From contig NC_086099.1 in NCBI RefSeq assembly GCF_963921235.1, forward strand, positions 45,632,001-45,696,000: a DNA stretch of 64,000 nt, given 5' to 3'. Made by a program: the position numbers and the translations under genes. Below the pieces are notes generated by a model. That model had not been told where the DNA came from. It searched no databases and worked only from the letters and a program-made list of their open reading frames with translations. Below are positions 4,168 through 62,214 of this stretch, in pieces (position 1 is the first letter of the stretch; each line of letters opens with the position of its first letter). This DNA comes from Mobula hypostoma (Eukaryota).

Positions 4168-4440
4168 ACACAAACAAAACACTGGAGTAACTCAGAAGGT
4201 CAGACAGCATATGTAGAGTGAAATAAATAGTTGACATTTCCCACCTGTTTCCCTTTCTTCCATGGTCCACTGTCCCTCCTATTAGATTTCTTCTTCTTCA
4301 GTCCTATACTTCTTCCACCTATCATCTCCCAGCTTCTCACATCAACCCTTCCCCCATCTTCCCCCTCACCTGGTTTCAACTATCACCTGTTACCTTCTAG
4401 CCCTTCCCCCACCTTATTATGCTGATATCTCCCTTCTTCC
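4168..4440. mobile_element. Old inverted Penelope pseudo-LTR remnant (minus arm, then plus arm)
   Basis: 4168-4240 is the reverse complement of the pseudo-LTR 3' end, ending in a hammerhead remnant (GTTGACATTTC). 4241-4440 is pseudo-LTR sense sequence. Confidence 0.6.
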
Positions 4441-20583: not shown

Positions 20584-20833
20584 TGAGTTCTTACAGCATT
20601 GTGTTTATTTGTTTTAAGAATTTTGACTTGGTAGAGGCTCTTCCCTCTAACTGGAGGTTAGAAAGGAAAGAGTATTGTCTCAAAATGTGGGATCAATCAT
20701 TCCATTTCGGAGTGCATTGTACTTCCTAGGGCTCTATCACTGAGAGTTTTCAAAGATGACATCAATGAAATGGTGTGCACAAAAGGAATCATAGGATGTG
20801 GGAAGGACAACAAAACAACTTGAAATATAGCAA

Positions 20834-21490
20834 ACAACAGGAATACTGCAGATGCTGGAAATTCAAGCAACACACATCAAAGTTGCTGGTGAACGCAGCA
20901 GGCCAGGCAGCACCTATAGGAAGAGGTACAGTCGACGTTTCAGGCTGAGACCCTTCGTCAGGACTAACTGAAGGAAGAGCTAGTAAGAGATTTGAAAGTG
21001 GGAGGGGGAGGGGGAGATCCAAAATGATAGGAGAAGACAGGAGGGGGAGGGATGGAGCCAAGAGCTGGACAGGTGATTGGCAAAAGGGATATGAGAGGAT
21101 CATGGGACAGGAGGTCCAGGGAGAAAGACAAAGCGGGGGGGAACCAGAGGATGGGCGAGGGGTATAGTCAGAGGGACAGAGGGAGAAAAAGGAGAGTGAG
21201 AGAAAGAATGTGTGTATAAAAATAAATAACGGATGGGGTACGAGGGGGAGGTGGGGCATTAGCGGAAGTTAGAGAAGTCAATGTTCATGCCATCAGGTTG
21301 GAGGCTACCCAACCTTCTTATCCCCTTTGCCAATCACTTGTCCAGCTCTTGGCTCCATCCCTCCCCCTCCTATCTTCTCCTATCATTTTAGATCTCCCCC
21401 TCCCCCTCCCACTTTCAAATCTCTTACTAACTCTTCCTTCAGTTAGTCTTGATGAAGGGTCTCGGCCTGAAACGTTGACTGTACCTCTTC
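20834..21490. mobile_element. Two-armed inverted Penelope insertion (minus arm 20834-21311, plus arm about 21313-21490)
   Basis: 15-bp TSD CTTGAAATATAGCAA at 20819-20833 and 21491-21505. The arms are reverse-complementary pseudo-LTR sequence, and the minus arm includes the GIY-YIG ORF end. Confidence 0.9.
20929..20966 (-). ncRNA. Minimal type-I hammerhead ribozyme (intact core)
   Basis: UAGUC-CUGACGA-AGG(7-nt loop)CCU-GAAAC-GUC/GACUG. Confidence 0.8.
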
Positions 21491-21659
21491 CTTGAAATAT
21501 AGCAAGCCATATATATCAGTAAGACCATCCTGCCTTAGTGATTCTGTCACAAATTCAAATATTCATGCAAATCAAAATAAAAGGCACAATTGAGAAAATC
21601 CAAGGAGTTATTAAAATACAAAGAAAAAGAACTAAGCAACAATGGAGCACTGGAGGCAA

Positions 21660-22290
21660 AAAAATTCAGCATGACCCTCACCAATTTTTATAGATGCATT
21701 ATAGACCGCATTCTATCCAGATATATTACAGCTTGGTAAGACAAGTGCTCTGCCCAGGTCTGAAAAAAGTTATAGAAAGTTGAGAACACAACCCAGTCTA
21801 TCACAGAAATCAGTCTCCCTTCCACAACTCTGTCTACACTTTGCATTGCCTTGGGAGAGCAGCCAACGTAATCAAAGACTCCTCCCATCCTAGTTATTTT
21901 CTCTTTATCCCCATGCATTAGGCAGAAGAAACAAAAGATTGAAAACAAGCGCCACCTTGCTCAAAACAGATTCTAACACACTGCTACATACATCAAAGTT
22001 GCTGGTGAACGCAGCAGGCCAAGCAGCATCTATAGGAAGAGGCGCAGTCGACGTTTCAGGCCGAGACCCTTCGTCAGGACTAACTGAAGGAAGAGTGAGT
22101 AAGGGATTCTAACACACTGCTATAAGACTCTTGATCAGACCTCATATATGATAAGAACCTCACAATCTACTCCATAAAAGCTGTTGCACTTTATTTGTCT
22201 ACCTGCAGTGCATTTTCCTGTGTATGTGTAATATCATATTCTACATTATGTTATTGTGTTTCCCTTTGTACTACTTCAATGTATTTATTT
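21660..22290 (+). mobile_element. Rex1/Babar-type LINE 3' end, interrupted by a Penelope fragment
   Basis: Same family as 32100-32920 (ACCCTCACCAATTTTTATAGATGCATTATAGA...). Confidence 0.7.
21987..22104 (-). mobile_element. 118-bp Penelope pseudo-LTR fragment with an intact hammerhead (22045-22082)
   Basis: 18-bp duplication GATTCTAACACACTGCTA at 21969-21986 and 22105-22122. Confidence 0.9.
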
Positions 22291-27060: not shown

Positions 27061-27800
27061 GAGAGTGACAACACATGCCATTGATTGGACCAGGAATTTT
27101 GTAACATTCAGTCAGCAACAATCCATTGGAGGAACTCAGCGGGTTGAGCAGCATCTGTGGGAGAAAATGAATTGTGGACATTTCTGGTCAAAGACCCCCG
27201 TCAGGACCTGAAACATCAACCACTCCTTTCCCCTCAGAAATCCTGCACAATAGGTTGTGTGTTGCTCCAACTTTTGTAGTCTTTCGTTTCTCCACTGCTA
27301 TACTGTGTTTTACATACTTTTAATCTACTATGGAATAAAGCAGTTTATGGTCTAAATCTTCCTAAATCTTCCTAGTAACGTCCAAATTTGGAGGAACAGG
27401 AAAAGATACCGACACAAGGAAACTACGCAGGTCTCAAGGAGGGAAGTTCTTGCTCACGCTATATTATTGTCAGTAAAATAATAAGTATTTTACAATAAAA
27501 TGCAAGTATTGTAGATGCCAGAAGTTTAAATAGAGAAGCAGAGAACACTGGAAATATACAGCATCTCTGGAGAATGAAGTAAAGCTGATGCATGGATTGC
27601 GCTGGACCATTTAGAATTGTTGATTGTTGACAGACGTAGCTGCATGGTCTGAATGGTGACTGAGATACAGTCTGTTCAGTGCAGAGATAAAACTTCTGAA
27701 ATATCTTGGTATGAGTTAACACAAATCAAACCTGAGAAGCAACACACATAAAAGTTGCTGGTGAACGCAGCAGGCCAGGCAGCATCTCTAGGAAGAGGTG

Positions 27801-27838
27801 CAGTCGACGTTTCAGGCCGAGACCCTTCGTCAGGACTA
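27801..27838 (-). ncRNA. Minimal type-I hammerhead ribozyme (intact core)
   Basis: Exact reverse complement of 28990-29027. Confidence 0.8.
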
Positions 27839-28989
27839 ACTGAAGGAAGAGTGAGTAAGGGATTTGAAAGTTGGAGGGGGAGGGAGAGATGCAAAATGAT
27901 AGGAGAAGACAGGAGGGGGAGGGATGGAGCCAAGAGCTGGACAGGTGATAGGCAAAAGGGATACGAGAGGATCATGGGACAGGAGGTCCGGGAAGAAAGG
28001 CAAGGGGGGGGGACCCAGAGGATGGGCAAGGGGTATATTCAGAGGGACAGAGGGAGAAAAAGGAGAGTGAGAGAAAGAATGTGTGTATAAAAATAAGTAA
28101 CAGATGGGGTACAAGGAGGAGGTGGGGCATTAGCGGAAGTTAGAGAGGTCGATGTTCATGCCATCAGGTTGGAGGCTACCCAGACGGAATATAAGGTGTT
28201 GTTCCTCCAACCTGAGTGTGGCTTCATCTTTACAGTAGAGGAGGCCGTGGATAGACATGTCAGAATGGGAATGGGATGTGGAATTAAAATGTGTGGCCAC
28301 TGGGAGATCCTGCTTTCTCTGGCGGACAGAGCGTAGGTGTTCAGCAAAGCGGTCTCCCAGTCTGCGTCGGGTCTCCCCAATATATAAAAGGCCACATCGG
28401 GAGCACCGGACGCCGTATATCACCCCAGTCGACTCACAGGTGAAGTGTTGCCTCACCTGGAAGGACTGTTTGGGGCCCTGAATGGTGGTAAGGGAGGAAG
28501 TGTAAGGGCATGTGTAGCACTTGTTCCGCTTGTGGCCACACATTTTAATTCCACATCCCATTCCCATTCTGACATGTCTATCCACGGCCTCCTCTACTGT
28601 AAAGATGAAGCCACACTCAGGTTGGAGGAGCAACACCTTATATTCTGTCTGGGTAGCCTCCAACCTGATAGCATGAACATCGACTTCTCTAACTTCCGCT
28701 AATGCCCCACCTCCCTCTCGTACCCCATCTGTTATTTTTATACACACATTCTTTCTCTCACTCTTCTTTTTCTCCCTCTGTCCCTCTGAATATACCTCTT
28801 GCCCATCCTCTGGTTCCCCCCCCCCGTCTTTCTTCCCGGACCTCCTGTCCCATGATCCTCTCATATCCCCTTTTGCCTATCACCTGTCCAGCTCTTGGCT
28901 CCATCCCTCCCCCTCCTGTCTTCTCCTATCATTTTGGATCTCCCCCTCCCTCTCCAACTTTCAAATCCCTTACTCACTCTTCCTTCAGT

Positions 28990-29027
28990 TAGTCCTGACG
29001 AAGGGTCTCGGCCTGAAACGTCGACTG
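28990..29027 (+). ncRNA. Minimal type-I hammerhead ribozyme (intact core; predicted cleavage after 29022)
   Basis: Stem I UAGUC/GACUG, core CUGACGA, stem II AGG/CCU, GAAAC, GUC triplet. Stem III is reduced to the loopless palindrome ACGU. Confidence 0.85.
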
Positions 29028-29911
29028 CACCTCTTCCTACAGATGCTGCCTGGCCTGCTGCGTTCACCAGCAACTTTGATGTGTGTTGCTTGAATTTCCA
29101 GCATCTGCAGAATTCCTGTTGTTTGCGTTTTCAAACCTGAGAACATTGCTTTGCCTTCTGCTGAATATCGTTTAGTTCAAGATACTTCAAGCATCACTGA
29201 ATTTTAAAAATGATTGGAACTGAAGGAGAGTAAATAAAAAATTTAAAAATAAAGAAAGTTAATTTTAAAAATGTGAAAGGCATTAAAATAATTAAAATGC
29301 ATTAAGCTAAAGGAAAATTATGCTTTAAAAGATGTGATTTCCCTTCTGTCTGCAGTCCCAAAATACCAATTGATTCAAACAGTTTGGCACTTCTAACCTG
29401 GCATAAGATTCAGGTGGCAATTCCCACTGTAATGGTAAGAAACTCAGTAAGGCTTGGCACTGCTGATGTACTCTCTGGAGATTCTAAGGACTGAGCATTG
29501 TGACAGATACGAGTGAAAAACAGAAAAAGTTGGGAAAACTCCTCAGGGTAGACCACATTGGCAGAAAGAGAAACATCTAACATTTTCAGTCAAGAATACT
29601 TTATCAAACAATCTGCCAGAGGAACTTAATGGACTGAGCTGGGTCTGTGGGAGAAAAGGATCGAAACCTGCTTGAAGGCTCCAGGAAATAGCTTCTAGCT
29701 CGAGATTCAAGAACTTGCAGTCTTATGTGTCTCCAGTTATGAATCCCCTTGCCCACCACCATCAATATATTCATCACTAAACTCAGAAATCTTGATACAT
29801 CCACACAAGTCTAGGACTTACTTCAATTGGAAGGCTAAACCTTACTGGGATTCAGTCAAATATTTCATGTGGATAACCTTTCATTGGAATAGTTACAGCA
29901 TTGGATTTTTA

Positions 29912-32920: not shown

Positions 32921-34220
32921 CTTACCTGATCAAACACATGTGAGGTGTGAAATACTTGTCAGAATTGTCAGCAGCAGTCAGGTTTATACTTCTGTATATT
33001 TGATTGGCTCAGTACCAGTAACAGAGATGCAAACACAGTAGGCATCCCAGTTTAAAATGGAGGTGGATGTACAATCCAGTGGCAAAGGGACAAAGATTGA
33101 GGAAATGTGACAAGACTTTTGATGTGATACAATGCCATTGGAAGAGAACAGAAGCAAGGGGAGGGAGATGGGTCTTGGATCCTAAATCTTGGAACAGAAT
33201 GTGATCTCAGGGCCAAAATAAATAAAACTCAGCCAGAAGGAACCATAAGTATGTGACTCAGAACAAAGACAAACCACAAGTCCAAGACTGATCACCAAGC
33301 ATCTTGATTGATAGTATACTTTGCACATTATGAGTGCATGTAATTTGTCTTTGCAAGTAAGAGTTTGAATACATTTAAATTTATCAGTAATTGTCAGAGG
33401 TGTGCCTTGAACATAAATGTGCTTAGGCACAACAAATTTTTGATTATTTTGCCACTTTTACATGCTTTCCAGAACCTCTGGCCTTCATATAAGGCATTCA
33501 ACATTAAAGATATTAAGCTTTGGAATTTTTTTCTCAAAACTGAATTTATCTTTCTGCCTTCAAGGCATCACTTAAACATGCCCTAATATCTCCCCTGTGC
33601 TTTAATGTCAAATGTGATTGAATAAAGCATGTTTAATACTTCTTTGAACATTAAGGATTTGAAATAAATGTGTTGATTATATGCACAGTCTTCCCACTTA
33701 AATTCTACATCATGGAAAATCAGAGGTTAAATGGTTAAACTTTTATTCATGGAAACAATCGTCTTTTGCAACATAAATAAGGTAACTGAAGTGATATGAA
33801 AAGAACACACTTAATACATATATGTTACATGAACACTTATGATTTGAGCATACAATTTATTGACTGTTATGAAAATGTTGCTAAATGAAAACTGCTTTTC
33901 ATAGGGGTAAAGAACAAGTACAGAAAAAATGTTTTGTTTCTAAATAGTAACTTTGAAGTGAACAACTGTAATTGTTTACATGAATGGACTACCTTCAAAT
34001 AGCTTGGAATATCAGATCCATTATGAAGTCCAAACTCTGCTCTGGATCTCTGACTTACAGAAATCCTGAGACCTCAATGATTTCAAATGGAATTATTGTG
34101 GGGGGGGCGGGAGGAGGGAAGCAAGTTTGCTGTTTAAAAATTCGTTTTGTTTAGTTTAATATTTTAAACTAAATGAATATATCTAATTCTCAGACATTGA
34201 AAATCTACAAATCATACTCA

Positions 34221-34402
34221 AAATGCTGAAGGACTCAGCAGGCCAGGCAGAATCTATGGAAAAGGGTACAAGAGATGTTTCAGGCCAAAACGCCGAAGGT
34301 ACTGTTTTACATAGATGTTGCCTGTCCTGCTGAGTTCCTCCAGCATTTTGTGTGCGTTGCTTGGATTTCCAGCATCTGCAGATTTTCTCTTGTTTGTGAT
34401 TG
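34221..34402. mobile_element. 182-bp inverted dimer of the Penelope pseudo-LTR 3' terminus
   Basis: 15-bp TSD TACAAATCATACTCA at 34206-34220 and 34403-34417. The arms meet within the hammerhead region (about 34290). Confidence 0.8.
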
Positions 34403-36328
34403 TACAAATCATACTCACTGCTTTTACAATTGACAACATTGGGTGAAGGTCTTTGCCAGTTGTCAAAGTTTTCATAGATTTTGAAGGGCAAGGTCACTTT
34501 ACTGCATTGCAAGAGGTCTTGCCACTGTCTAAACCACAATGGTGGGGCCTAAAACTAGGGTCGAGATTGTGCGCTGGATGAAAGTCATTGTCCATCTTTC
34601 TTTTTCAATCTTTTTATTAAGTTTCAAGATTAATAAACATAACAATAATAGTAATGATACATAGAGATCGGGATTACAATAGTAACAGTTAACATGTACA
34701 AGCGCAGATTCCAAGTAACAAATATAGTTTAACCTCCCAATCTCATAGTAACTGACCATGAGAAAGATATTTTATAAAGAGAGAAAAAAGAAACCCCCAA
34801 AACTAAAAAAACACAAGTAAACTGAAAAAAAGAAACAAAGCTTGGGCTGTCATATTACATCGGCTAAAATTATTATTTGTCGTTATCTCCGCTCCTCTAC
34901 ACCTGAACAAAAACTACTACAAGGGATTTTGAAAAGGTCAACTTACATCATATGAAAATATTGAATAAATGGCCTCCAAATTTCACCGAAGGATCCATAG
35001 TACCACTCCTAATTTTTTCCAAATTTAGGCATGCTGTCGTTTGGGAAAACCATTGCAATGTAGTGGGGGGATTAGAATCTTTCCATTTAAATAAAATGGA
35101 TCTTCTGGCTATTAACGTAACAAATGCAACTAGACGACAAGCTGACATAGATAAATGACTAGAGTCTATCATTGGTATTTCGAAAGTTACAGTAATAGGA
35201 TGAGGTTGAAAATCAATATGCAGAACTACTGAAATAATATCAAAAATATCTTTCCAATATTTTTCTAGAAGAGGACAAGACCAGAACACATGTGCCAAGG
35301 AAGCTACCTCAGAGTTACATCTATCACAAACAGGATTTATGTGGCAATAAAAACGAGCTAACTTATCCTTGGACATATGAGCTCTGTGAACCATCTTAAA
35401 CTGTATCAAGGCGTGTCTGGCACACATTGAGGAAGTATTGACTAATTGAAGAATTTTCTCCCATTTCTCTGCAGATAAAGATATTTGAAGTTCTCTTTCC
35501 CACTCATTCTTAATTTTATCAGATGTACCTAGATGTATTTTCGTAATCAGATCATAAATAATTGCTATTAAAGTCTTTCGATAGGGGTTTAAACCTAAAA
35601 TTTTTTCTGTAACTTCAATTTGATGCGATATCGGAAAGGTAGATAAAGTAGTGTTCAAAAAGTTTCTAATCTGTAAATATCTGAAAAAGTGTGATCTAGG
35701 CAAATTCTATTTATTAGACAACTGTTCAAAAGACATAAAACATTCACCCATGAATAAATCACAAAAACATGGTATTCCCTTTGTTTTCCATAGAAGAAAA
35801 GCTTGATCAATTCTAGATGGTTGAAAGAAAAAATTAGATATAACTTGACAGGATAAATTTGTTCAATCCAAAGTATTTACAAAATTGAAACCATATTCGT
35901 ATCGTATGTTTAATTATTCGATTTATCATTTGTTTATTCAAGTTAGTAAGTGGAAAGGGAGGCGCAGCTCCTAGAATAGAAGCCAGTGAAAATCCCTGTA
36001 CAGACTCCCACTCGAGGTTCATCCATCGTGGACATTGAGTTTCATCCAGTTCTTGTGTCCAAAATGTTAAATATCGAATGTTAATTGCCCAGTAGTAAAA
36101 TCTAATATTCGGCAAAGCCAAACCGCCTTCCTTTTTTGATTTCTGTAAATATTTCTTACTTAACCTGGGATATATGAAGAAATTTTAGAATCAATAATAT
36201 CAAAAAAAGATTTAGGGATAAAAATTGATACCGCCTGACATAGATACAGAAATTTAGGTAAAATAATCATCTTAATAGTATTAATTCGACCAATCAAAGA
36301 TAAGGACAATGGGGACCATTTAGTAAAT

Positions 36329-38508: not shown

Positions 38509-39109
38509 TAGTAAACAGTTGTTTAACATGATCAATTAAGGGTAAAAAATTAACTTTAAATAGATCTTTATGCTTCTTAGTAATCTTAACACTTAAGTAA
38601 GTAAAATAATCAGTAACTAATCTAAATGGTGATTGTCTATAAATTGGAACTTGCATATTTAATGGGAAAAGCACACTCTTAGCAAGATTCAGTTTATAAT
38701 CTGAAAAACTGCTAAACTGAGCAAATAGTGTTATTACTGCAGGAGTGGATTTCTCTGGGTTAGAGATATATAGTAACAGGTCATCTGCATATAGTGATAC
38801 TTTATGCGTCTCATTCCCACGAATAATGCCAAATATATTAGGTGAATCATGAATAGCTATTGCCAAGGGCTCCAGGGCAATTTCAAAAAGTAAAGGGCTT
38901 AAAGGACAGCCCTGTCTAGTACTTCGAAATAGCCTAAAAAACGGGGATCTCTGATTATTGGTAAATACAACAGCCAGAGATGTACGAAATATCAATTGAA
39001 TCCAGGATATAAATTTTGAGCTGAAATTAAATTTCTCAAGTATATCAAGTAAATATTCCCATTTAAGTCTGTCAAATACCTTCTGGGCGTCAAGCGAAAT
39101 AACACATTC

Positions 39110-40504
39110 AACAGGAATTCTGCAGATGCTGGAAATTCAAGCAACACACATCAAAGTTGCTGGTGAACGCAGCAGGCCAGGCAGCATCTATAGGAAGAGG
39201 CGCAGTCGACGTTTCAGGCCGAGACCCTTCGTCAGGACTAACTGAAGGAAGAGTGAGTAAGGGATTTGAAAGCTGGAGGGGGAGGGGGAGATGCAAAATG
39301 ATAGGAGAAGACAGGAGGGGGAGGGATGGAGCCGAGAGCTGGACAGGTGATAGGCAGAAGGGGATACGAGAGGATCATGGGACAGGAGGTCCGGGAAGAA
39401 AGACGGGGGGGGGGGTGACCCAGAGGATGGGCAAGAGGTATATTCAGAGGGACAGAGGGAGAAAAAGGAGAGTGAGAGAAAGAATGTGTGCATAAAAAAG
39501 AGTAACAGATGGGGTACGAGGGGGAGGTGGGGCCTAGCGGAAGTTAGAGAAGTCAATGTTCATGCCATCAGGTTGGAGGCTACCCATACGGAATATAAGG
39601 TGTTGTTCCTCCAACCTGAGTGTGGCTTCATCTTTACAGTAGAGGAGGCCGTGGATAGACATGTCAGAATGGGAATGGGATGTGGAATTAAAATGTGTGA
39701 CCACTGGGAGATCCTGCTTTCTCTGGCGGACAGAGCGTAGATGTTCAGCAAAGCGGTCTCCCAGTCTGCGTCGGGTCTCACCAATATATAAAAGGCCACA
39801 TCGGGAGCACCGGACGCAGTATATCACCCCAGTCGAATCACAGGTGAAGTGATGCCTCACCTGGAAGGACTGTTTGGGGCCCTGAATGGTGGTAAGGGAG
39901 GAAGTGTAAGGGCATGTGTAGCACTTGTTCCGCTTACACGGATAAGTGCCAGGAGGGAGATCAGTGGGGAGGGATGGGGGGGGACGAATGGACAAGGGAG
40001 TTGTGTAGGGAGCGAACCCTGCGGAATGCAGAGAGGGGGGGGAGGGAAAGATATGCTTAGTGGTGGGATCCCGTTGGAGGTGGCGGAAGTTACGGAGAAT
40101 AATATGTTGGACCCGGAGGCTGGTGGGGTGGTAGGTGAGGACCAGGGGAACCCTATTCCTAGTGGGGTGGCGGGAGGATGGAGTGAGAGCAGATGTACGT
40201 GAAATGGGGGAGATGCGTTTAAGAGCAGAGTTGATAGTGGAGGAAGGGAAGCCCCTTTCTTTAAAAAATGAAGACATCTCCCTCGTCCTAGAATGAAAAG
40301 CCTCATCTTGAGAGCAGATGCGGCGGAGACGGAGGAATTGCGAGAAGGGGATGGCATTTTTGCAAGAGACAGGGTGAGAAGAGGAATAGTCCAGATAGCT
40401 GTGAGAGTCAGTAGGCTTATAGTAGACATCAGTGGATAAGCTGTCTCCAGAGACAGAGACAGAAAGATCTAGAAAGGGGAGGGAGGTGTCGGAAATGGAC
40501 CAGG
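39110..40504 (-). mobile_element. 5'-truncated Neptune-type Penelope element (RT C-terminus/thumb, Cys linker, GIY-YIG, pseudo-LTR with intact hammerhead at 39203-39240), nested in the L1 RT
   Basis: 10-bp TSD TAACACATTC at 39100-39109 and 40505-40514. Motifs LPFLDL, YYKPTD, SQFLRLRRICS, CKRNKCYTC and GVIYCVRCSRCGLLYIGET. Confidence 0.95.
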
Positions 40505-41357
40505 TAACACATTCTGGAGTTTTAACTGAAGTAGTGTATACAATGTTCATTAGCCTCCTAACATTAAAATGTGAATAACGATTTTTAATAAATCCTGTCT
40601 GATCTTCGGAGACAATTTGTGGTAGTACATTCCCTATTCTAATTTCTAATATTTTGGAAAAGATTTTAGAATCCACATTCAACAAAGATATAGGTCTATA
40701 AGATGCACATTCAGTGGGATCTTTATCTTTTTTAGGAATTAATGAGATAGATGCTTCATAAAAGGATTGTGGTAATTTACCTACAGATAAGGCATCTTTA
40801 AAAATTCTACGTAACCAGGGAGAAAGTACGTCTGAAAAAGATTTATAAAATTCAACTGTATACCCATCCGGGCCAGGTGCTTTACCAGAATTCATCGAAA
40901 AAATTGCTTTCTTTATTTCTTCTTCAGTAATGGGTGCATCTAAAGTTAAACGCTCATCAGCTGGTAATTTCAGAATATTTAGTTTCCTTAAAAATTCATA
41001 CATTATGGTAGGATCATCAGGAAATTCTGATTGATATAAATTGGTATAAAATTCTTGAAAAGGTTTATTAATTTCATCATGGTCAACTGTCAAATTACCA
41101 TCCCGTCTACGAACTTTAATAATGTGACGTTTCGCCAAAGCAGCTTTCAATTGATTAGCCAGTAGTTTACCCGATTTATCACCATGTATGTAAAATTGAC
41201 TCTTAGTTTTAAGTAATTGATTTTCCAATCGGGCTGTTAATAACAAACTATGTTGCATCTGAACTTCAACTCTCTCTTTATTAAGCTCCAAGTTAGGAGC
41301 AACAGAATATTTTTTATCAATTTCGTTAATCTTTATCAGCCAATGTACGTATTTCAC
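39534..41357 (-). pseudogene. 607-aa chimeric ORF: L1 ORF2 N-terminal RT segment fused in frame to the Penelope thumb and GIY-YIG nuclease; lacks the RT catalytic core
   Basis: The junction ...KTPECV|TWSISD... coincides with the TSD at 40505-40514. The YADD motif lies outside it, in ORF 38432-38995. Confidence 0.85.
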
Positions 41358-52945: not shown

Positions 52946-54599
52946 TAAATGAAACCTGTGACTTCTACATTGCAGTTTGACTCTTTTGGCAGAACCTCAT
53001 TACTAGTTCTGACTATGGCAGTCACCTCTACATAGATCTTCTCATGGAAACTGGATACCAATCCTTTTTTAAAAAAAAAGTTCTGCTACAGCATCATGGA
53101 ACTGTCTTTCACATGGACACAGGGCAAACAATACAGCCTTTAGAATTCTGTTCAGTGATGCAAAGAAAGTGTGACTTTTCCATCTTTTCTCCTAATTTTT
53201 CAAAGCCCAACCACAGAGAATGCTATTTTCACTCCCCATATTTTACCATTTAAAATTCAGAATTGCTTTGGAGTTGCAGCCTTTACTTTCTATTAATTGC
53301 ATCATAGGATAAATGGTAACAATAATAAAATGGTTTTCAGTTGTCAAAACTTTTCCCATGTTAAATAATTGAAAAGGTATAATTTTGCCATTACATAATT
53401 TGTTTTCATAAGCTAAGTATGTTTGCGTTTACCATGACTGAATATAAAAGTTCCCACAAGTTATGGAACATTGAAAATGTTACTCTGTCTATTTGCCACA
53501 GTGACCAGAAGCACAATTTAATGTCCAAAAATAAGTTTTGAAATTATTAACTAAAGAAAGGCTCCAATTTGAAAAACAACTTGTATATAAATGGGTGTTA
53601 TTGACCCATAGTACAACCATTGGTTTAGTTAGCACTGAAACAATTTCTATCACAAAAGCAAATTGTCCATAGACATGCCTTGGCAATAAAATCACATGGA
53701 ATTTCTGCTTTCACTTGTTCAAATTGGAAATTATACCTTTGCCACACAGAATAATGATAGATTAAACATAACTATAAGTTCGGGAAAAACTAAATTCAAA
53801 TGACTTAACTGGATACCAACAATAATGAGTTCATCAAAATTAAGTTCAAGATCTTTCATGGGAAAACAGAAATAATAAACTATAATTGAGAATAAATCGT
53901 ATTCTAGTATTCCAGTTTAAAATGTGCCAGGATATTTGAAATCAGCAATAAACATGACTTTATTTCATGTTCTTGGCTTACGGAAGAACCATATATAACC
54001 AAACAAAGTTTTTAAAAAAAAATCTTGTCACTCTCCATACTCTCTGCTGGAAATCCTATCTGAAAAGGAAGGAATGGTGTCTTCAAACAAATGGGAAAAA
54101 AATACCTGAAACAACCCTTGTTTTTGAAAACAAAGTGAGAAAAGAGTTCTTGATGATTGAGGAACAGAATAACTTCAATAAATATCCTGATGTTGGGGAC
54201 AATCTAATCACCTATTTAGCACAACTAAATGATGGACTATGAAAAGTTTTGATTTCTTTCTTTCATATCTGTTTAATCTGCACCGAACTCAACTTTAATT
54301 TTATTGGTGCTTTACAGCACCGGGCCTGGAGATAGACCAAGTGCAGTATGGTAGTTTTCAGCTAAATGAGCGAGATGACAGAAATTGACTCTAACAAATT
54401 TTCAACTTTCATTCTTTCAGACACCAAAAATGAAGATGTGAAATTACTGAGAGTTTCATCTGTCAGTTTTCACATCCATTGTTAATGAATATCCTGTTGT
54501 ACAATGGGTATGGCCCAGAATGGCAGCATTTGTCAACAGCATCCTATTACTTTAGAATGGTATTATCATCCAGGATAAAAATAGGATCCTGATTCTGAA

Positions 54600-55642
54600 A
54601 CAGGAGGAAATCTGCAGATGCTGGAATTTCAAGCAACACACATAAAAGTTGCTGGTGAACGCAGCAGCCCAGGCAGCATCTCTAGGAAGAGGTACAGTCA
54701 ACGATTCGGGCCAAGACCCTTCGTCAGGACTAACTGAAAGAAGAGCTAGTGAGAGATTTGAAAGTGGGAGGGAGAGGGAGAGATCTGAAATGATAGGAGA
54801 AGACAGGAGGGGGAGGGATGGAGCCAAAAGCTGGACAGTTGATTGGCAACAGGGATATGAGAGGATTATTGTTACGCTTCCCCCCTCACTACCTTTCAGG
54901 GCACCAGACAGTCCTTCCAGGTGAGGCGACACTTCACCTGTGAGTCGGCTGGGGTGATATACTGCATCTGGTGCTCCCGATGTGGCCTTCTATATATTAG
55001 CGAGACCTGACGCAGACTGGGAGATCGTTTTGCTGAACACCTATGCTCTGTCCGCCAGAGAAAGCAGGATCTCCCAGTGGCCACACATTTTAATTCCATG
55101 CCCCATTCCCATTCTGATATGTCTATCCAAGGCCTCTTCTCCTGTCAAGATGAAGCCACACTCAGGTTGGAGGAACAACACCTTATATTCCGTCTGGGTA
55201 GCCTCCAACCTGATGGCATGAACACTGACTTCTCTAACTTCCGCTAATGCCCCACCTCCCCATCGTACCCCATCTGTTATTTATTTATATACACACATTC
55301 TTTTTCTGTCTCTCCTTTTTCTCCCTCTGTCCCTCTCACTATACCCCTTGCCCATCCTCCGGTTTTCCCCCCTCCCCCTTTTCTTTCTCTCTGGACCTCC
55401 TGTCCCATGATCCTCTCATATCCCTTTTGCCAATCAACTGTCCAGCTTTTGGCTTCATCCCTCCCCCTCATCTTCTCCTATCATTTCGGATCTCCCCCTC
55501 CTCCTCCCACTTTCAAATCTCTTACTAGCTCTTCTTTCAGTTAGTCCTGACAAAGGGTCTCGGCCCAAAACATCGACTGTACCTCTTCCTAGAGATGCTG
55601 CCTGGCCTGCTGCGTTCACCAGCAACTTCTATGTGTGTTTCT
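54600..55642. mobile_element. Two-armed inverted Penelope insertion (minus arm 54600-54867, plus arm 54872-55642 with GIY-YIG)
   Basis: 10-bp TSD TGATTCTGAA at 54590-54599 and 55643-55652. The hammerheads at 54695-54732 (minus) and 55542-55579 (plus) have core mutations. Confidence 0.9.
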
Positions 55643-56356
55643 TGATTCTGAATGCCAAGTTCAGTTTAACATAAGCATTCCCATTTTCCTGTTAAATGCC
55701 CCAAGCCATCTTGCGCAGACTCTGATTGTACCATGATTCCACTATTCCTTTCTTCATATAGCCTTTCTTGACAGTACACGTGCATAGGTACATCAAGGAC
55801 AGGCAGACAGTTTCCCAATGTTCATATTTGCATATATTCCAGAAAGAATTAATTGTCAAAATAAAGTTGAGGGTCTTGGTTATTTAGGTGAAAATTCAGG
55901 CAAGGAATTGCTTCACGGATATCCAAAAAGAATAGCCTAGATTGAGCTGCGTCACCTTTAGATTTACAAAAGAGACACCTTGCTGCCCAGCTAAATATTG
56001 AAGTGCAGCAAAATAGATTTCCAGAAGGGAAATCATGTTTCACAAGCTAATAACTTTTCTTGCATTTGTAGGGGAAATTTGAGAAAAGAATACAGTCAGC
56101 TTCTCAGAAAGCCTTTCATAAAGTCCTGCATAAAAGTGCAGCATGAAAATTAAAATGCATTGTCTTAGAAGTAACACATTAGCTTGGATTGAAAATTGTT
56201 TGACAGATAGGAAACAGACTGGAATAAATAGGTCTCTTTTACCAGTAGGATTTTGTAAGATTCAGGGTTCGTGCAACAGCTGTTCATCAAATATGTTAAC
56301 ATGTATTTCATAATTTTCCGCAAGGATCAGTGCTGGGACCTCTGTTGTTTGTAATA

Positions 56357-59460: not shown

Positions 59461-60000
59461 TGTGCTTGGATTTATGGTAACACTTAGCTTTGGATAGCTG
59501 GACAAAATCAGAGGCAAAAGAGGACAGCACCTAACCTCTGACCTTTCCAAATTTCTGTCAAGTAAATTGCCTAAGTTTGCTAAATTTCTTCTTCTCTTTG
59601 AAAGCTGATGGGCTAGTGCTATTTGAGCTACACCACAGCTCCTATTCACTCTCTTCTCTGCTGCTCGGGATGTCAATTACATATTTGGCTTCAGAAAGCG
59701 AGTGGTTTTGTTCTGCAGGACGCCTCTAATGCAAGATCTGTGAAAGAAACTCTGTAAAAGAATGAAGAGCTCAGTGGAAATTCAACATTTGACAGATTTG
59801 TAGGCTTTTGTTATCTAATACAAATTGAGTGTGAGTCACTTTCTCCACTGTTCCTGGCAAGCTTGAACTTACAGCATCAAACTTTCTTTTTTATTATCAT
59901 TGACATACATCATGAAATTTGTTGTTGTGAGGAAGTAGTACAGAGCAAGAATAAAACAATTGTTATAACTTACAATAAAAAAATAAATAATGCAAAAGAG

Positions 60001-60212
60001 CAACATACATCAAAGTTGCTGGTGAACGCAGCAGGCCAAGCAGCATCTGTAGGAAGAGGCGCAGTCGACGTTTCAGGCCGAGACCCTTCGTCAGGACTAA
60101 CTGAAGGAAGAGTGAGTAAGGGATTTGAAAGCTGGAGGGGGAGGGGGAGATGCAAAATGATAGGAGAAGACAGGAGGGGGAGGGATAGAGCCGAGATGTT
60201 AATGCAAACTGT
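60001..60212 (-). mobile_element. Penelope pseudo-LTR fragment of about 200 bp with an intact hammerhead (60062-60099) and templated filler
   Basis: 13-bp TSD TAATGCAAAAGAG at 59988-60000 and 60213-60225. Filler TGTTAATGCAAACTGT at 60197-60212. Confidence 0.88.
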
Positions 60213-62214
60213 TAATGCAAAAGAGGTTGTGTTCATGGCCCAGTCAGAATTTGGTACAACTGAAAGTGTGGCCCAGATACCAGCTGATGACTGGTTCAGG
60301 TGCTGAAGTAAATGGTACAGTAAACAGGACAACTAGGTTTTGTATTCACTTAAGCATAAAAGCATGAACGGTGGGAAATAAATTAACAAAATTCTGACAG
60401 GGCCGGACTGACTGGATATGGGGAGAATGATTGCTCTGACTAGGTGTTGAGAATGAGGAGTCACAATCACAGGTTATGGGGCAAAAGGTTTAGAAATCTC
60501 TTCAATCAATGGTGCAGAACCTTCAGAATTTGCTATCCTAGAGAGTTGGATAGATAAAATCAACGTGTATATGAAAGAAGGAGGTTTATTCATTTATAGA
60601 TTTTAAAAAGCACCTAAGAGTATGAAGGGAGAACAGAATATGGTATGGAGATTGTTTATCAACTCCATGTTTTAATTTAATAATTTGATTAAAATTACTG
60701 AAAAGTACTTATATACAAACCATTTTTTCCAGCTTCGTAATAGATTATACCTAGAAATTGTGTGCAGTTATGTTTTTCTTAAGCCTGGTCTGCAAACTTT
60801 TCCAGGGACTTTTCCTTAGATAATTTTAATCTCTAAAAAGAGAGATGTTAATGCCTGAAAATTTTCTTACCAAAACAAGTTCTTTTAAGTTTTCTTTGAT
60901 TCCCCACCCCCCCCAAAGATGTATATATACAAAGAAGACATGGTAAAATATTGAGACATGAACCAGGACATGACAAAAAGTTCTGAAACATAACAGTCAT
61001 AATTTCTGGAACTGTAAATTTGAAGCTGAACAGTTCATGTTATGTTGCCTTAGAAATTGCTCTAAAACACACAAGCTCAAATAATTAACTGCCAACAAAT
61101 TGTAACACAATTCAAAAATCAAACCACATTCAAGTCACAGATATTATAGCATATGTAAACATTCTATGAATTTTTAGATAGTTAAATATCTCTGACCGTA
61201 ATGTAGTTTGAAATATGAAATGATTATTTCTCCTTAGTTCTCTTTTGTATAACACAAATAAAAATATTAATGGTAATGAATATTGCATTACATGGTGGCT
61301 CCTTTTAAAGTAAGCAAATGAATTACAGCACAAATATTTGCTAGCTTTTCACAGCTATCATTTACAATAAAATGACCTTAAGAGTACATTTTCTGGCAAA
61401 CTGTTAGTGCAGTTATTCAACATTACTTCTGAGCTGGTCATGAAAGCCAAATAGTGTTCTTGGGAATAAGCAACGCAAAGATCAAAGCTCAATTATAATA
61501 AGAAATATGTTTATTGATACAAGTAGTTGAGTCCCTTACTACTTCCTTTGTTGGAGTTTGTGAAGGGCTTGTCATGGGAGTAAGGTTAGTCTTGCTTGGG
61601 CTGTAATGCAAACAAATAAACTGGAAGACTACACCTTGTTCAATAATCTTTTCAGTTGAATAAACATCCTAAGAGCTGAGAAGTACAAATAAACTAAATG
61701 CATTTTACAGCAGTATGAACACTATTGATATATATTGAACATAATGAGCACATCCTCACATGTTGTAATGTTTTATGATTTCTCAGAAGTAGCAGGAATA
61801 TAAATAAGTTCGCAGCAATTCGATTTTGGCTACAGTTCTTCACAGATGCATTTGAAGCAAAGGTGTTCATACAACGTGCACAAAATATGATATCTGAGAT
61901 TTGAACTACAAATTTTCATTTTGTTCCAAAAGTTCTGATCTTCCGGAAGCTTAAGGCTTAACACGTTCCTTATTTCAAAATTAACTCATATACACATAAA
62001 AAGTTGGTGTGCAAAATTATGGCTCCCGAGACTGGGGAAGTACATTGACATTCATTGGTCAACAGACAGGACATAAAGAGTAGGAATAAATGGGAGTTTC
62101 TCAGGGTTGCAGCAATGGCCTTCTGGATCAGTGCTTGGGCCCCAGCTTTTCAAAATACATCCCAATGGCTTGGATGAAGGAAATAAATGTAATATTTCTA
62201 AATTTGTTTTTCAG

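Follow-up and report, generated by a model that had tools for sequence, protein, structure and literature searches.

Several structural features are known from Penelope-like elements (PLEs), including a main copy accompanied by an adjacent one that is inverted and 5'-truncated, with one target site duplication (TSD) of variable length around the unit (PMC8557442, PMC3846280), and a one-sided tail, which is a standard PLE feature (PMC8557442, PMC3846280). It is acknowledged that the origin of tandem and inverted PLE insertions has yet to be explained (PMC8557442, PMC11167929). Frangieh et al. (2024) reported that the purified PLE protein PAc, from Poseidon of Anolis carolinensis, nicks and extends both target strands in vitro (PMC11167929). 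This protein, which is predicted to be a dimer, initiates reverse transcription beside a stem-loop and uses two adjacent internal start sites, the interval between them being the tail, with the same start-site choice for both strands in vitro (PMC11167929). The question of whether one or two RNAs serve as template is not addressed in that paper (PMC11167929).

The focal insertion of this study, located at 27726-29143 of a 64-kb window (the whole stretch of DNA analysed), represents a single integration event of a PLE and is typical of PLEs, the host family being new. Inverted segments inside one TSD also arise by L1 twin priming, reportedly described by Ostertag and Kazazian in 2001. In this process, the second primer pairs with an internal site of the same RNA, which leaves the inverted part more 5' and the 3' end unduplicated. 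The focal insertion shares with it the inverted segment and, if both nicks were primed, the use of the second target strand as a primer, but differs in that the same 3' region is present in both arms. L1 twin priming was ruled out as an explanation, as the alignments of both arms cover the same 3'-terminal ~560 nt of the element. In young Alu and L1 subfamilies, mosaic diagnostic sites, which are attributed to gene conversion or template switching, likewise mix alleles that define different subfamilies within single copies. In the focal insertion the mixture is instead found between two arms of one event, which provides an internal control that ordinary copies lack.

Like published PLEs (PMC3846280; Craig et al., 2021, PMC8557442), the insertions analysed here combine an inverted truncated copy with one TSD (9-14 bp here), extensive 5' truncation, a 30-40-nt tail restricted to one end and a terminal-region motif that resembles a hammerhead. 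In contrast to these, both arms are short 3' fragments without a full ORF and without a direct pseudo-LTR, and the copy number in the devil ray is very high. Nicking and extension of both target strands, tail-bracketing start sites and initiation next to a stem-loop would be shared with PAc (PMC11167929). As the layout and the priming from both nicks have already been published, the new part is the occurrence of arm differences at positions that are variable family-wide, which hints at two non-identical templates but does not prove them.

Anatomy and identity of the focal insertion

The 3' ends of both focal arms face outward inside one perfect 13-bp TSD (Table 1), and TSD and alignment agree with the earlier note, made from the sequence alone, which had described a 13-bp TSD around two outward-facing copies of an element 3' end. 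The minus-strand left arm runs unbroken through the end of the GIY-YIG ORF (...GVIYCVRCSRCGLLYIGETRRRLGDRF...SNFR*), followed by ~430 nt of 3' UTR, ends with ...GTGTGTTGC without a tail, and shares 96% identity with the single-arm copy at 39110-40505. The right arm including its tail comprises 599 nt (28532-29130, plus strand) and meets the left arm at a blunt internal junction (28531/28532). The focal tail sequence is also present in the copies at 39110, 20834 and 54600 and corresponds to the published PLE tail (PMC8557442, PMC11167929).

The element is an endonuclease-containing PLE. Its ORF end, which is retained in the focal left arm, carries GVIY-CVRCSRC-GLLYIG, i.e., the GIY...YIG motifs with cysteines between them, and matches Pfam PF01541 (GIY-YIG) with an E value of 2e-4 and 22.0 bits, just below the cutoff of 22.6. 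Homologues of the element ORF carry PF26215, PF01541 (GIY-YIG) and PF00078 (RVT_1), with RVT_1 and the C-terminal domains occurring together only in the more distant homologues P0015 and P0050. All element copies in the window are 5'-truncated before the reverse transcriptase (RT) core, and among annotated proteins, an 'uncharacterized protein' of Mobula hypostoma is the closest (90% identity). The 3' UTR contains a hammerhead-like core (CTGAYGA...GAAAC) followed by the palindromic GTCGAC, with 10 matches in the window versus 0 expected. Searches against Rfam yielded chance matches only, with no hammerhead model among them at the gathering threshold or at E<=10, and the ribozyme is considered putative. 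The tailless end lies directly 3' of a predicted hairpin (GCAAC-N10-GUUGC). The element 3' end is very abundant, with ~22 HMM hits per 64 kb and ~268,000 contigs mapped in one run.

Table 1. Positions of the two-armed insertions, the single-arm reference copy and variant sites at which the focal arms differ
Feature	Position	Strand	Details
Focal TSD, left copy	27726-27738		13 bp, TCAAACCTGAGAA; direct-repeat comparison, 100% identical to right copy
Focal long left arm	27739-28531	-	793 nt of element 3' end (GIY-YIG ORF end and 3' UTR); alignment
Hammerhead-like core, left arm	27809-27833	-	CTGACGAAGGGTCTCGGCCTGAAAC; motif search
Focal short right arm	28532-29091	+	last 560 nt of same element region, 5'-truncated within GIY-YIG ORF; alignment
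Hammerhead-like core, right arm	28995-29019	+	motif search
Tail, right arm only	29092-29130	+	39-nt extension; alignment
Focal TSD, right copy	29131-29143		13 bp, TCAAACCTGAGAA; direct-repeat comparison
Second two-armed insertion	20834-21491		minus arm 20834-21311 with tail; plus arm 21313-21491 tailless
TSD of second insertion	20820-20833 and 21492-21505		14 bp, TTGAAATATAGCAA
Third two-armed insertion, divergent family	34220-34402		left arm tailless, right arm with tail
TSD of third insertion	34206-34219 and 34403-34416		14 bp, TACAAATCATACTC
Fourth two-armed insertion	54600-55642		minus arm 54600-54869 with tail; plus arm 54872-55642 tailless
TSD of fourth insertion	54590-54599 and 55643-55652		10 bp, TGATTCTGAA
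Two-armed copy in Mobula hypostoma locus L001	L001:1657-3414		TSD TACCTGCAA; left arm with tail
Single-arm reference copy (C39)	39110-40505	-	with tail, 5'-truncated; TSD GAATGTGTT at 39101-39109 and 40506-40514
Variant site	C39 position 39152		G/T, 71/29% in the window's species; focal arms carry opposite alleles
Variant site	C39 position 39190		T/G and third allele C; G 34% in the window's species; focal arms differ
Variant site	C39 position 39293		C/G, 22/78% in the window's species; focal arms opposite
Variant site	C39 position 39405		CpG site, two common alleles; focal arms opposite
Variant site	C39 position 39436		T/C, 40/60%; focal arms opposite

Recurrence of the two-armed layout

Two arms within one TSD of 9-14 bp were found in four cases in the window and in one further case in L001, a Mobula hypostoma DNA locus outside the window that encodes the homologue P0001. 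The same design had been noted before at 20834, 34221 and 54600, and three more TSD-enclosed inverted pairs are indeed read there; the TSD length of 10 bp given for 54600 is correct, while the 15 bp given for the other two has to be revised to 14 bp in both. The eroded cases suspected near 4168, 27120 and 31320 fared less well, as only 27131-27268 reads as an old short two-armed copy. The sequence at 4168 is one single old element end, and a search for inverted repeats near 4168, 27120 and 31320 found none.

The arms are of unequal length (793/599, 478/179, 270/771 and about 1080/690 nt), and the plus arm of the second insertion ends ~50 nt early. The element coordinate of the internal junction differs among all four cases analysed, and the junctions are blunt or contain 1-2 nt of filler, with the exception of ~7 nt of microhomology in L001. 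Identical junctions at many loci, which had been named as a sign of a pre-formed palindromic master, were not seen, and the unequal arms and varying junctions argue against such a master as well as against the simple unfolding of a hairpin. One internal junction common to four loci was considered and rejected, as the 231-nt 'centre' proved to be the upstream continuation of the long arm. Junction-spanning words were found in organism B, a sister species, for 0 of 2 sampled, both occurring only in the probable source sample, a number too small (n=2) to be evidence of absence. Organism B contains 0.68 of the words of the locus.

In locus L001, a divergent PLE family has also left a small insertion with two arms (L001:11735-11950), in which no clear TSD is readable. 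It follows a 1.4-kb single-arm copy of the main family, the tail of which lies ~200 bp further upstream.

Differences between the arms and the number of templates

The focal arms differ at 25 of 568 alignment columns, comprising 19 substitutions (3.4%) and additional indels. About 12-13 of these differences are private to a single arm, in line with decay. The earlier note had listed three transversions between the arms together with their matches in other copies; all of these are correct by alignment, although they form a subset of the 25 differing columns rather than the total. For family-wide alleles, the single-arm copy (39080-39960) served as the reference on which Logan contigs of four runs, covering the window's species and three relatives, were mapped. 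Allele shares are depth-weighted over contigs and do not represent copy counts, and the best 40 of 138 variant rows were used. The three transversions correspond to 39152, 39190 and 39293 (Table 1), all of which are sites with common alternative alleles family-wide.

Five of the 19 focal substitutions fall on the 20 common-variant sites (from the best 40 of 138 rows) among 557 aligned positions, and the placement is non-random (P = 0.0003 for random placement). In the three other arm pairs, which are about twice as diverged (7.6-7.9%), only 3 of 66 differences fall on such sites (Fisher P = 0.012 versus the focal pair). Common-variant sites are thus not simply mutation hotspots, and hypermutable sites were rejected as the cause because these older arm pairs show no enrichment. 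The number of common-variant sites that differ between the focal arms (five) compares with 3-5 between unrelated copies of the same subfamily, i.e., the two arms of the focal insertion are as unlike as unrelated copies, and no state is unique to both focal arms together. Given the many young copies in this ray genome, the arms of one event can be compared at family-polymorphic positions.

Position 39190 (alignment column 775; CCTA[T/G/C]AGATG), which corresponds to 27788, 29043, 20916 and 21484, is tri-allelic across the family and located ~50 nt from the tailless start site. The arms differ at this position in two of four two-armed insertions (G/C in the focal copy, T/G in the 20.8-kb copy).

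The combination 775G+813T (alignment columns) of the focal left arm is also present in the L001 single copy and in the 54.6-kb arms, and the combination 775C+813G of the right arm is found in the 60-kb copy. Three informative sites group the left arm with the L001 single copy and the right arm with C39, and one groups the arms together. The left-arm allele 39293C conflicts with other markers, which requires at least one recurrence or recombination under any model. Placing the arms on a tree, as the earlier note had envisaged, gave a mixed result: in the maximum likelihood (ML) tree the focal right arm groups with C39 and C60 and not with the left arm, but an approximately unbiased (AU) test gave p = 0.14 for a tree with the focal arms as sisters, which is thus not rejected, and the 54.6-kb arms are sisters (81/76), as are, weakly, the L001 arms.

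The focal arms may have been copied from two non-identical template sequences, a reading that we favour over the alternatives at about even odds and for which the statistical support derives from sequence comparison of the focal copy, one of four analysable pairs. The claim of the earlier note that the arms were copied from separate RNAs accordingly holds up in part: site placement, shared allele combinations and the ML tree favour it for the focal copy, whereas the AU test and the private differences of the other pairs do not. As templates, either two separate RNA molecules or two units within a single tandem read-through RNA are conceivable, between which the data cannot distinguish. With the arms of one event as the object, 'one RNA or two?' becomes a countable genomic test, in which the single informative case leans to two non-identical templates.

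It is possible, although we regard it as rather doubtful, that both nicks were primed on one RNA, or on two identical RNAs of one source, and that the arms diverged later by mutation and short-tract ectopic gene conversion. The decay-like private differences would be expected in this case, as would the CpG transitions at 39405 and 39367, the homopolymer indels at 39363 and 39415, the exclusively private differences of the other pairs and a sister relationship of the focal arms, which the AU test left standing. As the family is very abundant, conversion donors are plentiful, and swapped common alleles could realistically stem from ectopic gene conversion; gene conversion is classically invoked for the mosaic diagnostic sites of human Alu. 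The same arm pattern would result from such conversion or from a tandem transcript of which two units served as templates. However, random mutation alone is poorly compatible with the placement of the differences (P = 0.0003, as above), and the focal pair is the least diverged yet holds the most common-variant differences, while older pairs should hold more conversions. Furthermore, the swapped alleles alternate between the arms over 17-100 nt, and at least four separate short conversion tracts would thus be needed in the youngest pair, with almost none in the older ones.

Proposed priming of both strands, tails and single-arm copies

The anatomy of the focal copy is compatible with the following sequence of steps. 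The GIY-YIG nuclease of the element would cut both target strands 13 bp apart, as judged by the TSD, and each freed 3' end would prime reverse transcription at the 3' initiation region of the element. One cDNA would start downstream of the tail and the second one directly 3' of the GCAAC...GUUGC hairpin, and only one arm would carry a tail because the start sites differ. Both cDNAs would then stop early at different points (793 and 599 nt), and the two inner ends would be joined without homology. Priming from both nicks, as already proposed in the earlier note, fits the single TSD, the unequal arms and the blunt or 1-2-nt-filled, locus-specific junctions and leans on the published in vitro data; it is not a new concept.

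Two other routes to a second arm appear far less probable. A fold-back origin, in which the cDNA snapped back and self-primed or a palindromic master was copied, so that the second arm is a copy of the first, has a precedent in the self-priming proposed for rotifer Penelope copies with palindromes at the inverted junction (PMC3846280). It is largely refuted here by the unequal arms in every case and the locus-specific junctions, which lack a palindrome and vary in element position from locus to locus, and it also disagrees with the restriction of the tail to one arm and with the focal arm differences at family-variable sites; we consider it very improbable. Two independent insertions, the second landing exactly at the 5' end of an older copy, would trivially explain different templates, and PLE proteins can target their own sequence (PMC11167929), but with one perfect TSD around both arms, neither arm having its own, and the same precise layout with 0-2 bases between the arms recurring in five cases, this is the least credible of the alternatives.

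Exactly one arm has a tail (~35-40 nt) in all five clear two-armed copies, four in the window and one in L001, an asymmetry within each pair that is absent from the earlier note. Single-arm copies with their own TSD occur both with a tail (39110-40505 and L001:10142-11534) and without (21983-22108 and 59999-60196), i.e., two of each. If start-site choice were independent, five tail-discordant pairs out of five would be expected with P ~0.03. This strict pairing of one tailed with one tailless arm suggests that the two primings are coupled, although for PAc the start-site choice in vitro is the same for both strands, and it represents a second constraint on any integration model. One RNA with two adjacent start sites would predict the strict tail pairing, which is thus also in line with a single template, but would predict identical arms as well.

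With regard to two non-identical templates, we tentatively propose that two RNA molecules are present in a Penelope integration complex and that the two nicked strands are primed on different ones, each with a start site, tailed or tailless, of its own. In the literature searched, a model with two RNAs for the Penelope arms was neither stated nor tested. If true, young two-armed insertions would be a fossil record of co-loaded template pairs, and genome data could be used to measure co-loading and trans-mobilisation in a class of elements with an unsolved integration cycle.

The single-arm copies display several additional features. The reference copy at 39110-40505 is inserted in the RT ORF of an L1-like LINE (39101-41357, minus strand) and is in frame by chance, giving rise to a 607-aa chimeric ORF that consists of the N-terminal part of the LINE RT and the C-terminal part of the PLE; the LINE reading frame picks up again right after the PLE tail (ISLDAQKVFDRLKW...). 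The tailless copy at 21983-22108 is a 126-nt mini-insertion with a 16-bp TSD (TTCTAACACACTGCTA) that is almost confined to the hammerhead-like core and the tailless 3' end. The 60-kb single-arm copy has a partial extra target copy (ATGTTAATGCAAACTGT) at its 5' junction (60180-60225), between the truncated element and the TSD (TAATGCAAAAGA). The alleles of the 39-, 22- and 60-kb copies at 39201, 39273, 39293, 39334 and 39357 account for 22-44% of the word depth in the window's species and for <=2.5% in the sister species, which suggests a young subfamily whose expansion postdates the split of the two species.
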